The translations under genes and the position numbers were made by a program. From Octopus bimaculoides (lineage: Eukaryota): DNA of 64,000 nt. The stretch spans positions 107,773,874 to 107,837,873 of the forward strand of contig NC_068982.1 of NCBI RefSeq assembly GCF_001194135.2, given 5' to 3'. Within the stretch, counting starts at the first letter, position 1. Each line of letters begins with the position of its first letter. The notes beneath the pieces were generated by a model. It had not been told where the DNA came from. It did not search any database and worked only from the letters and a program-made list of their open reading frames with translations. This document shows, piece by piece, positions 388-56,586 of this stretch.

Positions 388-788
388 TTATTAAGCAATC
401 TATTATATTACATCTATTAAATATATTACATCTATTAAATTAAATAAAAATAAGAACGAAGAACATTTTGGAAAAGCTTCTAATGTTTCCACATAGAGCG
501 AACTCAAGCAAAATCTCAAATACTTGTTCAACATATAAATCTCAGAAAATAAACTAAAGTATAAAAAATGAATTTAAGAGGTGAAAGCTTCCAAATAAAT
601 GTAAAATAGCTTTTAAATATACAACAAATATATTAGATATATCCAGCAAAACATATAAAGCTCCAGTGAAAGCGTATTCAAAAAAAGCCGGATTAATAAT
701 GAACAATAAAAATACAAAAAATTACAATAACTGAAAATTTGTAATAATGTCAAAATGAAAAAAATGAGCCAACCTTTTTCATGTATAT

Positions 789-1030
789 CATGCTGGTAAC
801 TGACTCCTCGCTGACCACACCCTAAGTTAATAAACAGATTACATGCCAAAAGTTAGATAACATGCAAGCTGCAGTGTAAGCGTGTTGCCTTCCACACATG
901 TGCCACAAAATAAAAATATTAGCTGTGAGAACTACAATAAAAACCAAAGTATACTTACAAGATTCAGCTCCTTGCTCTATAAGATGACAATAAAGAGAGG
1001 AATTGAGTTAAACATGCAAACAATCATGCA
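789..1030 (-). promoter_or_regulatory. Cluster of Rbfox-type (U)GCAUG splicing elements around the microexon
   Basis: Plus-strand CATGCA (UGCAUG in the pre-mRNA) at 861-866, 1013-1018 and 1025-1030; additional GCAUG at 842-846 and 789-793. Confidence 0.55.
959..976 (-). CDS. MYH10-like: Probable 18-nt loop-1 microexon of the myosin (SKELNL)
   Basis: Minus strand reads ttcctctctttattgtcatcttatag|AGCAAGGAGCTGAATCTT|GTAAGT. Strong pyrimidine tract, perfect donor, frame-preserving phase 0/0, and located where loop 1 falls between the P-loop exon and the expected GELE exon. Confidence 0.75.
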
Positions 1031-7046: not shown

Positions 7047-7262
<216 letters not shown>

Positions 7263-14973: not shown

Positions 14974-15001
14974 GTGCATAGAATGGACTGATCTTCTCGA
15001 T
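14974..15001 (-). CDS. MYH10-like: Non-muscle myosin II heavy chain, 28-nt exon (D)REDQSILC(T)
   Basis: Minus strand reads ttttccacag|ATCGAGAAGATCAGTCCATTCTATGCAC|GTGAGT. Phases join the flanking exons to give [21 protein letters not shown]. Absent from the ORF track because it is short. Confidence 0.96.
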
Positions 15002-23588: not shown

Positions 23589-24387
23589 AGTGCCACACCC
23601 TAACAGTTGCGGGAACCCGTGGAAGAGGTAGGCCCAGGAAGACCTGGGCTGAGGCAAGACCTTCGAAAATTGGGCCTCACCAAGGTGATGACTTCTGACT
23701 GAGACCTTTGGAAATATGCTGTGCGTGAGAAGACCTGGCAAGCCAAGTGAGACCTAAATCCAAGGCCTCTGCCAGGGGTGTAGCCAGCCCACTTATGCGT
23801 ACCTTTCCTTCTTTGGACACTAAACTCCGCTTGCGAAGACCTGTTGAGGCAAGTGAAATCAAAACCGAACTAAATTTGATGACTGGCACCCATGCCAACG
23901 TTGTCTCCTTCATTGGACACGAAACTCAGCTTGCGAAGACTTATTGGGGCAAGCGAAAGTGAAATCGGGATGGCACCTGTGCCCAGCGTCGCCTTTCTGA
24001 CACTTGTGCCCGTGGCATGTGTAATGGACTTTTGAGCGAGATCGTTGCCAGCACCCCTGGACTAGCTCTTGTGCGGGTGGCACATAAAATACACCATTTG
24101 AGCGTGGCCGTTGCCAGTACCGCCTGACTGCCCTTCGTGCGGGTAGCACGTAAAAGCACCCACTACACTCTCAGAGTGGTTGGCGTTAGGAAGGGCATCC
24201 AGCTGTAGAAACTCTGCCAAATCAGATTGGAGCCTGGTGTAGCCATCCGGTTTCACCAGTCCTCAGTCAAATCNNNNNNNNNNGAGCCTGGTGTAGCCAT
24301 CCGGTTTCACCAGTCCTCAGTCAAATCGTCCACCGCATGCTAGCATGGAAAGCGGACGCTAAACGATGATGATGATGATGATGATGA
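23589..24387 (+). mobile_element. 5'-truncated RTE LINE: ORF C-terminus, 3' UTR and (GAT)n tail
   Basis: KCHTLTVAGTRGRGRPRKTWAE (RTE ORF C-terminal motif) followed by a modular 3' UTR and aaacgatgatgatgatgatgatgat. The 10-N gap at 24274-24283 is flanked by a duplicated segment of about 40 nt. Confidence 0.85.
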
Positions 24388-25826: not shown

Positions 25827-27232
25827 CATAAACAAATATTGCTTTATGGATAGTGCAGAAATGTGCAAAAAATAAAAGGGACCCTAATGACCTTTGGTGT
25901 AATTCCAACTCTGCCAGCTCACAAATGGTTAAAATGAAGTAAACTACCAACAAGGTAAGGCATTTCTTAATCCTGAATTTTAAAAGAACAAACAGGAAAA
26001 TAATGGAAAAAGAAGGTATTTCATAATTTAGCTGTTCCTCGACAAAAACATCTTTCATGAAACTTACAGCATGAGATAATTATGAAGTAATGGGACAATT
26101 CATTAAATTTGGCAAACTAAGTTCTTATAGAAAATACTTGGAGTGGGACTGAAGAATGAAGTTTACCTCAATATCTTTGGAAATAATGGTAGTAAAGAGC
26201 TCGACTTGCAACATCAACAGAGTAGTTGCAGTGGTGAAAAGAACTTATCACAAGCTACACTACATATTCAATTCAACACTTTATATAAATGATCAGCAGA
26301 ACCAATCCAAATATGTAAACAGTACTACATTTTATAGCAGATTTGGTTCTTGTAAAGATACAATAGAGCTTCAGATGCTAGAAACATTTTTGAGTGTTTG
26401 AATGACTCCCATTATTCTAAGCACCACCTCAGAAACAAAAATAATGTTAGAGCTCCATCTCAAATCAGGGTTTAAGAACTACAGCTATCTAAACAAGGAA
26501 ACTCTTTCAAAACAGTCGTGGGATGAAGAGGAATTCCACAATAGTGGTAAAGAGAAATGAGGTTGCTATTGGAAGCATTAAATGTAACAAGCAATTTGTC
26601 TATTGCACAAACTCAGCCAGATTACTGGAAAGACCTGCTGCTAGTTTCAAATGTGTGATGTTCTTAGTGATGTACCATCAGCAAATATGTCGATAAAAAA
26701 TTTCATTACTTTACTGGAGCAAAGGGAAAAAAGAACACAGAATTACAGAAAGATTCCAAGGAAATGTTTACATTGATTTCATAAATGTCAGAGAACTGAC
26801 TGCTGATGCTAACTTACAGATTTCTTCTGATCAGAAATGATTTGATGGTGGAAAATATTTACTGTAGCCAGTCAAGCTATGAAGTAATCCTCTATCCCAT
26901 ACCTTGCAAAATTGTTTTAGTGATATCTAAGGCAACAACATACATCAAAGCTGCTATCTAGTGCACCAGTTAACCTATGAGTAATGATTGTCACTATATC
27001 AGCAATCAGGTATGGATTTGAGACCTAAGAGTCTATGCAAACAAAGAGAACTTCAAAGCTGTCAGGAATTCCACAATGATGGCAACATGAAACAAAGTTG
27101 GTTTGGAAGCATTAAATATATAAAATTTCAGTCCTCTGCTTATCATTGAGGAGAATGGCTTTATTCAAGTGGTTAATGATGTGTTTGTTAATGATGAACT
27201 CAAAGAGCTATTTTTGAAGCTTAGTGGTCTAT

Positions 27233-28258: not shown

Positions 28259-28415
28259 CTTGAAGCATGCTTCTGTAAGCAGTATCTGTGATAGCGAAAA
28301 CATGTGGTGGTACTTCATGCCGTTTCTTGCCACGATAGAGTTCAATAACCTTATCCTGGTAAATAGGTAACCTCTTGTAAGGGTTCACCACAACACAGAA
28401 CAATCCAGAATATGT
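28259..28415 (-). CDS. MYH10-like: Non-muscle myosin II heavy chain, motor-domain exon (157 nt)
   Basis: Encodes [52 protein letters not shown] plus 1 nt. Acceptor ttttacttgcag and donor G|GTAAAG. Classic myosin II motor sequence; splices in frame to the 28-nt exon (G|AT = Asp). Confidence 0.97.
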
Positions 28416-55742: not shown

Positions 55743-56249
55743 TATATTTATATACATATACATATACATATATATATATACATACATACATACATACATA
55801 TATACNNNNNNNNNNNNNNNNNNNNNNNNNNNNNNNNNNNNNNNNNNNNNNNNNNNNNNNNNNNNNNNNNNNNNNNNNNNNNNNNNNNNNNNNNNNNNNN
55901 NNNNNGCCACACTTAAGTGGCAATATACTACACTATATATATATATATATATATTTATATTTATTCATATTTTTTTCATTTTATCTAGTTTTAGCTCATG
56001 ATGATCTATTGTTACAGTCATCTGAAAATAGCATTTTTAGTTTTGTATGCACAGAATCATGTCAAGAAATTGTACTAACGCATCAATCATAGAAATGATT
56101 TAACCCTTCAGAATTTATACCAGCAACCCAAATATGCTAACCAACCAGATCTAGCCTCTCGTGCCTATCCTACAATATCATTCTAAAAATAATCATATCA
56201 TTGAAGTCTTGAAGCTGCAAGATAATGCAGGATTAATTTAAAATAATTG

Positions 56250-56586
56250 TGGCCGTTGCCAGTACCGCCTGGCTGGCCTCCGTAGGATTTTTGAGCAAGA
56301 TCGCTGCCAGTGCCCCTGGACTGGTTCTTGTGTGGGTGGCACATAAAATGCACCATTTTGAGCGTGGCCGTTGCCAGTACCGCCTGACTGGCCTTCGTGC
56401 GGGTGACACGTAAAAGCACCCACTACACTCTCTGAGTGGTTGGCGTTAGGAAGGGCATCCAGCTGTAGAAACTCTGCCAAATCAGATTGGAGCCTGGTGT
56501 TGCCATCCGGTTTCACCAGTCCTCAGTCAAATCGTCCAACCCATGCTAGAATGGAAAGCGGATGTTAAACGATGATGATGATGATG
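56250..56586 (+). mobile_element. Short RTE 3' fragment inserted into a piggyBac-like MITE
   Basis: ggccgttgccagtaccgcc...gatgttaaacgatgatgatgatgatg interrupts the MITE, which begins ttaacccttcag at about 56100 and resumes ...ataagcattagatctgacagagtaatc. Confidence 0.8.

Follow-up and report, generated by a model that had tools for sequence, protein, structure and literature searches.

Loop 1 is one of the few sites at which myosin II motors are tuned by alternative splicing, and the N30 exon that enters this loop in vertebrate MYH10 is a textbook target of Rbfox. Whether an invertebrate motor loop is switched by the same splicing factor, and in which direction, is the question raised by a 64,000-nucleotide (nt) stretch of the Octopus bimaculoides genome (contig NC_068982.1, positions 107,773,874 to 107,837,873; here called the window, in whose coordinates octopus positions are given). 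On its minus strand, which carries all myosin features described here, the window holds part of a non-muscle myosin II (NMII) gene with an 18-nt microexon encoding SKELNL (exon a) and a second alternative loop-1 exon of 48 nt (exon b), both accompanied by UGCAUG motifs. Exon a is a real and already annotated alternative exon, its use being shown at the level of gene models. From its conservation and that of the motif, we consider it somewhat probable that it forms part of an ancient cassette for kinetic tuning of loop 1 under predicted Rbfox control, in which the upstream motifs would favor skipping.

Results

Exon a begins 6,095 nt downstream of the exon encoding the P-loop. With its flanks (slashes mark splice junctions) it reads ...ctctctttattgtcatcttatag/AGCAAGGAGCTGAATCTT/gtaagtat, or, with a longer acceptor flank, ...tcctctctttattgtcatcttatag/AGCAAGGAGCTGAATCTT/gtaagtatac; the acceptor is ttatag, and the exon contains no stop codon. 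An earlier note on this DNA had described a frame-preserving SKELNL exon between ttatag and GTAAGT, about 6 kilobases (kb) past the P-loop exon, and this was confirmed at 976-959. The splice-like pattern by itself is weak evidence for exon a: the window contains 14 candidates of the form YAG/3n-without-stop/GTRAGT on its plus strand and nine, or roughly one every 7 kb, on its minus strand, where two of them have a good pyrimidine tract. The impression that the exon was unannotated proved wrong, since SKELNL is found in the RefSeq proteins XP_052834540.1 (isoform X3) and XP_052834541.1 (isoform X4), where the microexon is modeled correctly. It is also present in gene models of O. sinensis and O. 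vulgaris. In the annotated proteins exons a and b both insert directly before GELENQ, and gene models either include or skip exon a; the proposed loop-1 exon of an invertebrate NMII stands as a genuine frame-preserving cassette.

Three constitutive myosin II exons were detected in the window by tblastn with myosin II queries (Table 1). The top database match was the O. bimaculoides "myosin heavy chain, non-muscle isoform X3" (P0121; 96% identity), which contains the domains Myosin_N, Myosin_head, and Myosin_tail_1 (PF02736, PF00063, and PF01576, respectively), and the nearest relatives in protein searches were all named non-muscle myosin or myosin-10-like. Judging by its P-loop GESGAGKT, its NMII-type sequence, and the domains of the full-length orthologue, the host gene is an NMII gene. 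The P-loop exon (GESGAGKT...SSMSSFHSS, the O. bimaculoides form; SSMSNFHSS in O. sinensis and O. vulgaris) closes in phase 0 and is the donor for every loop-1 variant. A second GT (gtgagc, 7061-7060, minus strand) lies 9 nt past the donor of this exon, in frame (GTA TGT TTG, encoding VCL), and at exactly this extension the O. vulgaris model P0249 inserts three residues, VCS; the VCL/VCS extension points either to tandem alternative 5' splice sites or to an artefact of annotation.

Exon b lies 137 nt downstream of exon a and encodes 16 residues; its ends read ttaacttag/GGTGTGGTC...ATGAAAAAG/gttggc. It falls partly in the interval of the earlier note (789-1030), where it was missed. The O. bimaculoides RefSeq isoforms represent three loop-1 states, namely no insert (X5 and X6), insertion of SKELNL from exon a (X3 and X4), and insertion of GVVSEESVTSMIYMKK from exon b (X1 and X2). 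Across these states loop 1, at the 25/50-kDa junction beside the nucleotide pocket, is longer by 0, 6, or 16 residues. Both inclusion and skipping occur among the models of O. bimaculoides, O. sinensis, O. vulgaris, and eight other mollusc genera. The cuttlefish orthologue of exon b, AVTKEEFSNMALFLKK, is located at L002 15748-15795. Exons a and b together were found in no octopus model and in one cuttlefish model (P0255: TKELNL plus AVTKEEFSNMALFLKK), and the frame is kept with both. Since P0255 is the sole model of this kind and likely bears transposon sequence, the combination is tentative. The cuttlefish (Acanthosepion pharaonis, L002) models P0123 and P0255, of 2,061-2,077 residues, have a faint RVT_1 match and probably contain transposon-derived sequence.

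Orthologues of exon a were sought in a genomic comparison of six species (octopus, cuttlefish, abalone, chiton, oyster, and nemertean) that includes a single octopod. An 18-nt exon encoding x-K/R-D/E-h-N-L, followed by a /gtaagt donor, occupies the same intron in all lophotrochozoan loci obtained (Table 1). The mussel peptide at this position is HKDVNL, the protein P0164 of the annelid Owenia fusiformis has YKDLNL, and like peptides occur in the proteins of unnamed transcript records. Models with and without the exon were found in Haliotis, Mytilus, Ostrea, Saccostrea, pectinids, Aplysia, Mercenaria, and Dreissena. Because the same 18-nt exon is present in every lophotrochozoan locus obtained, exon a dates back at least to the lophotrochozoan ancestor. 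In a collembolan, the same place is taken by a 42-nt exon that ends in ...PLFNI/gtaagt. Relative to the vertebrate inserts, position and phase are the same and a C-terminal h-x-h pattern is common, the peptides being too short and divergent to align; orthology of exon a with the vertebrate B1, C1, and SM-B exons is possible, not demonstrable. In many bilaterians the inserts end in a hydrophobic-small-hydrophobic/aromatic pattern before GELE (..ELNL, ..GLNF, ..SFSF, ..SLAY, and ..PVSY).

In gene models the orthologue of exon a is often combined with lineage-specific loop-1 microexons such as PHIVQQ, QPSFSF, DDKFSK, and GIDERSHIM. Further microexons of this kind appear in combinatorial fashion in bivalve and gastropod NMII models (P0128, P0148, P0320-P0347, P0147, and P0275-P0306): PHIVQQ in oyster; GIDERSHIM, QNTFSF, and DDKFSK in Mercenaria; ESSSFSK, QPSFSF, and DDRGHIT in Dreissena; PSTDRQNALTL and GSNVFTQ in scallop; and (Q)DGGKNVDALKQ in Aplysia. 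In the NMII genes of molluscs, loop-1 microexons form a combinatorial set.

The earlier note had counted three UGCAUG and two GCAUG within about 240 nt around exon a, and these counts are exact (Table 1). The fifth motif, which it had taken as intronic, is coding sequence of exon b, and the two motifs that it had read as downstream and activating (866-861 and 846-842) are better read as upstream motifs of exon b, at -45 and -25. The introns contain three UGCAUG and one GCAUG at distances of less than 100 nt from exons a and b. Each of the two exons has two (U)GCAUG about 25-55 nt from its 3' splice site, one of which adjoins a branch-point-like sequence, with 0-4 nt between the 3' UGCAUG and this sequence. 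Sense-strand TGCATG occurs 20 times in the 64 kb, and two copies are found in 0.045% of 46-nt windows, the site at exon a included; the motif cluster is not chance-like. The units of exons a and b have in common UGCAUG, a putative branch point at -32, and AGC[A/G]AGGAG or ACCAAGGAG codons. Local alignment scores between the two units were matched by 4 to 49 of 500 shuffles, which are weak statistics, and exon b may, as a weakly supported reading of these likenesses, be a cephalopod duplication of a motif-branch point-exon unit.

Upstream of exon a, octopus and cuttlefish align near-perfectly over TGCATGAnTG(T)TTGCATGTTTAA, and the intron farther upstream is unalignable. The putative branch point of exon a has a cuttlefish equivalent, uuuAAu, at the same place, and TCTAAC at that of exon b is invariant between the two species. 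The position of the second octopus UGCAUG is occupied by UGCAUG in cuttlefish (-35), abalone (-58), and nemertean (-52), and the octopus UGCAUG at 866-861 has as its cuttlefish counterpart a GCAUG, with the hexamer incomplete and 3 nt out of register. In a scan of all hexamers across the six species, TGCATG was the sole hexamer present in five of six at -110 to -25, any others present in at least four species overlapping TGCATG, and no hexamer was common among the species at +7 to +100 downstream. The Poisson-binomial probability for the upstream TGCATG was about 1e-6, or 6e-5 with the cephalopods counted once, in a position window picked after seeing the data. Judged on these comparisons, UGCAUG is conserved just upstream of exon a. 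The conservation of its UGCAUG motifs favors an ancestral over a convergent switch, the two origins that the earlier note had left open, at least within Lophotrochozoa.

Farther afield, (U)GCAUG within 300 nt downstream of exon a was seen in the two cephalopods only, where it coincides with the region upstream of exon b. Close UGCAUG pairs are located downstream in abalone (+1699 and +1725; L001 36990-37021) and chiton (+1350 and +1384; L003 ~26465-26505). These pairs, 1.3-1.7 kb downstream, resemble the MYH10 N30 enhancer, and an octopus counterpart, if any, lies beyond the window. Over the whole loop-1 intron, sense-strand TGCATG was enriched about twofold or more in four of the six species (combined P = 5.5e-4), and in the reverse-complement control P was below 0.05 in one of six (Ostrea, P = 0.046). 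Abalone has three UGCAUG within about 100 nt past the 5' splice site of the P-loop exon (L001 32624-32715), and no equivalent of this cluster was found in octopus near 7070.

Table 1. Features of the octopus NMII locus and orthologues of exon a. Positions refer to the window unless a locus (L number) is given; motif starts are relative to the exon.
Feature	Position	Strand	Sequence or spacing	Basis or remark
Alternative microexon a	959..976	-	AGCAAGGAGCTGAATCTT = SKELNL, 18 nt, phase 0-0, strong 5' splice site gtaagtat	Sequence; RefSeq isoforms. Upstream TGCATG starts -54, -42; additional GCATG none
Alternative exon b	774..821	-	ttaacttag/GGTGTGGTCAGCGAGGAGTCAGTTACCAGCATGATATACATGAAAAAG/gttggc = GVVSEESVTSMIYMKK, 48 nt, phase 0-0, weak 5' splice site	RefSeq X1, X2
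UGCAUG no. 1	1025..1030	-	Starts 54 nt upstream of exon a	In cuttlefish-conserved block
UGCAUG no. 2	1013..1018	-	Starts 42 nt upstream of exon a, abuts putative branch point	Sequence
Putative branch point, exon a	1007..1012	-	uuuAAc, A at 1008 (-32 of exon a)	Matches yUnAy
UGCAUG in the 137-nt a-b intron	861..866	-	Starts 93 nt past exon a, at -45 of exon b	Sequence
Putative branch point, exon b	852..857	-	ucuAAc, A at 853 (-32 of exon b)	Read from sequence
GCAUG	842..846	-	Starts 25 nt upstream of exon b	GCATGT in register in cuttlefish
GCAUG	789..793	-		Coding sequence of exon b
Constitutive P-loop exon	7071..7191	-	A/GGA GAA TCT GGA GCT GGT AAA ACA ... AGT TCG/gtatgt	tblastn; identical to O. 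bimaculoides isoforms
Constitutive 28-nt exon, upstream of P-loop exon	14974..15001	-	(D)REDQSILC(T)	tblastn
Constitutive exon	28259..28415	-		tblastn
Exon a orthologue, cuttlefish	L002 15563-15580		TKELNL	Upstream TGCATG starts -46, -35; additional GCATG none
Exon a orthologue, abalone	L001 35274-35291		NKEFNL	Upstream TGCATG start -58; additional GCATG -69
Exon a orthologue, chiton	L003 25098-25115		QKELNL	Upstream TGCATG start -186 only; additional GCATG none
Exon a orthologue, oyster	L006 22271-22288		SKDINL	Upstream TGCATG start -103; additional GCATG -78
Exon a orthologue, nemertean	L004 14339-14356		YKDINL	Upstream TGCATG start -52; additional GCATG -89

Beyond the features listed, tblastn found neither the GELENQ exon (GELENQLLQANPILE) nor an exon preceding TYSGLF in the window, and the next exon downstream sits beyond position 1. 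The 35 kb that come before 28415-28259 (28416-64000) yielded no exon for the part of the motor that precedes it (...MNPPK...LTCLNEASVLHN...YSGLIY). The window contains 3,029 Ns, with gaps at approximately 49.7-49.9, 55.8, 57.8-58.6, and 59.2-59.6 kb, and many microsatellites; therefore, either the intron exceeds 35 kb or the exon lies inside a gap. Near-identical open frames (...GTGNGH.../...YWQRPRSK...) at 23600-24200 and 56200-56520 on the minus strand are presumably copies of one dispersed repeat inside the myosin introns. A 135-codon open frame (...NYRGIKLLDQVMKVTERVIAQLIRERINLDE) at 3-407 on the minus strand, in the myosin intron that follows exon b and in sense to the gene, runs off the end of the window and looks like the start of a non-long-terminal-repeat retrotransposon reverse transcriptase. 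In Pfam (E <= 0.01), no match was obtained for this frame or for two other long open frames.

Discussion

With conservation of both the exon and its upstream motif in hand, the direction of a putative Rbfox effect may be approached from known cases. Inserts B1 and C1 in loop 1 give rise to kinetically distinct variants of vertebrate NM-2B and NM-2C (PMC3535348), and neuronal inclusion of MYH10 N30 requires two UGCAUG 1.5 kb downstream as well as Fox-3 and PSF (PMC3082911). As a rule, (U)GCAUG upstream of an exon represses and downstream of it activates; upstream repression is exemplified by egl-15 exon 5B and by calcitonin/CGRP exon 4, whose -34 element acts by blocking SF1 at the branch point (PMC2777236). 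The Fox-1 family is an evolutionarily conserved metazoan regulator, whose RNA-contacting RRM surface is kept down to C. elegans (PMC2777236). Given the conserved upstream UGCAUG and this position rule, repression is predicted for exon a, opposite to MYH10 N30.

In the mechanism that we propose, Rbfox would occupy the UGCAUG tandem that precedes exon a by 35-60 nt, where the 3' copy abuts the probable branch point, and likewise the (U)GCAUG pair upstream of exon b. Bound Rbfox would hinder recognition of the branch point and the 3' splice site. Cells expressing Rbfox would then favor skipping of the exons, giving a motor with a short loop, and other cells would include exon a or b; distal downstream UGCAUG might add an opposing, activating input. 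Since loop-1 length tunes ADP release and motor speed in work on myosin II, the loop-1 variants are probably kinetic isoforms. An 18-nt loop-1 exon accompanied by UGCAUG has been retained in molluscs and in at least one nemertean, which suggests that the pairing of splicing factor and motor loop is very old.

Several points weigh against this proposal. Chiton is without a proximal motif, the nearest being at -186, and in oyster the full hexamer is found only at -103. In octopus, one UGCAUG lies 93 nt downstream of exon a, and distal downstream UGCAUG, activating by the position rule, occur at 0.6-3 kb in all six species. Because these distal motifs may oppose the upstream ones, we hold repression as the direction of control at about even odds. 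Alternative use of the exons is drawn from gene models (RefSeq Gnomon and others), Rbfox binding and dependence in molluscs are predictions, with an octopus Rbfox assumed from pan-metazoan conservation, and for the a and b inserts a kinetic effect is assumed by extrapolation from the smooth-muscle and non-muscle myosins of vertebrates. Kinetic effects of B1 itself are only modest.

The downstream motifs are also the starting point of the model in the earlier note, which saw in exon a an Rbfox-activated, neuron-enriched insert like MYH10 B1/N30, with a downstream UGCAUG enhancer and with upstream copies that dampen its effect, yielding "graded inclusion". This model, which we regard as unlikely, draws on the octopus UGCAUG and GCAUG 93 and 113 nt downstream of exon a, on the distal downstream UGCAUG in each species examined, including the abalone and chiton pairs with their resemblance to the N30 enhancer (PMC3082911), and on the enrichment of UGCAUG over the whole loop-1 intron. 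However, the proximal downstream motifs are confined to cephalopods and lie at -45 and -25 of exon b, beside its putative branch point, and the species have no hexamer in common at +7 to +100, whereas the element conserved across phyla is the upstream one. Moreover, a cloned squid NMII complementary DNA (Q8SWQ7, P0125) is without any insert; it probably derives from nervous tissue.

The conserved UGCAUG might also serve something other than Rbfox, by acting as an SRRM-type (eMIC) UGC element, contributing to an RNA structure, or binding a different factor, which we consider quite improbable. UGCAUG does include UGC, and exon a, a microexon whose 5' splice site is strong, is in this like the microexons that depend on SRRM3/4, which have UGC downstream of the branch point or pyrimidine tract and ahead of the AG (bioRxiv 10.1101/2024.09.17.613571). 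Yet octopus, cuttlefish, abalone, chiton, and oyster have no TGC among the ~35 nt that immediately precede the exon, the motif being located on the upstream side of the tract, and it is the full hexamer that is conserved, not UGC alone; regulation of the SRRM/eMIC type was rejected on motif position. RNA structure was rejected as well, the 286-nt region folding no better than shuffled sequence (z = -0.07). Other features were likewise rejected, with no match in Rfam and, on either strand, only short, chance-like open frames. Least credible is the reading that a motif cluster of chance or neutral origin happens to surround a real alternative exon, and we judge it extremely improbable. It would accord with the recurrence of the splice-like pattern about once per 7 kb, with a count of TGCATG on both strands of the window that does not exceed expectation by shuffling (39 observed, 44 expected), and with the chiton. 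But two copies within 46 nt are as rare as stated above, and five of six lineages, although separated for hundreds of millions of years, have an upstream motif in an intron that is otherwise unalignable. The octopus gene, with three loop lengths and two motif pairs, offers a simple invertebrate test system in which motif position can be set against the direction of regulation.

It is conceivable, albeit doubtful, that the history reaches deeper, and that Rbfox control of an NMII loop-1 microexon is ancestral in bilaterians. Exon a would then be orthologous to the B1, C1, and SM-B exons and to exons found in arthropods, the collembolan ...PLFNI exon among them, with the link persisting for more than 500 million years; polarity would have switched from an upstream silencer to a downstream enhancer in the MYH10 lineage, and exon b would be a unit duplication in cephalopods.

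Among known systems, the closest is N30/B1 of MYH10 (NMHC II-B), which belongs to the same gene family, has the same insertion point before GELExQLL, and consists likewise of a small phase-0 cassette between the same two constitutive exons with a two-copy UGCAUG (PMC3082911; PMC3535348). Unlike exon a, N30 is 30 nt long and encodes an unrelated peptide, and its inclusion in neurons is activated by a UGCAUG pair 1.5 kb downstream, whereas the conserved octopus pair lies 35-60 nt upstream, beside the putative branch point, and would repress; octopus has exon b in addition. The 7-residue SM-B insert of MYH11 and the 8-residue C1 insert of MYH14 are loop-1 cassette microexons of near size at the same position, although homology to x-K-D/E-h-N-L is not demonstrable. 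Both inserts raise actin-activated ATPase and motility, and kinetic tuning by the octopus exons is suggested on this ground. Bivalve microexons of the QPSFSF/QNTFSF type look closer to the SM-B peptide, QGPSFAY, than does the KDINL exon.

Among invertebrates, Drosophila zipper is also an NMII gene with a spliced loop-1 insert; its alternative exon at the 25/50-kDa junction (Mansfield et al. 1996, J Mol Biol 255:98) reportedly adds about 40 residues of unrelated sequence. Loop-1 splicing of invertebrate NMII would therefore not be new in principle, and we know of no link between the zipper insert and Rbfox. In the literature searched, we found no paper on NMII loop-1 splicing in molluscs or cephalopods, nor any account of the deep conservation of the exon, its association with upstream UGCAUG, or the combinatorial loop-1 microexons of molluscs.

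In the arrangement of motif and branch point, the octopus exons resemble calcitonin/CGRP exon 4 (-34) and egl-15 exon 5B, where UGCAUG lies tens of nucleotides upstream, at or near the branch point, and Rbfox/ASD-1 blocks SF1 and branch-point recognition, leading to skipping or alternative exon use (PMC2777236). The geometry matches these upstream silencers, as the 3' UGCAUG of exon a ends 5 nt before the putative branch A (-32) and that of exon b is similarly placed. The genes are different ones, and binding and repression are predicted here from sequence; no co-factor motif, e.g., the GUGUG of SUP-12, was identified at the octopus exons. Taken together, the octopus locus represents a known kind of system, a loop-1 cassette of the B1/C1/SM-B type, and no new type of mechanism.

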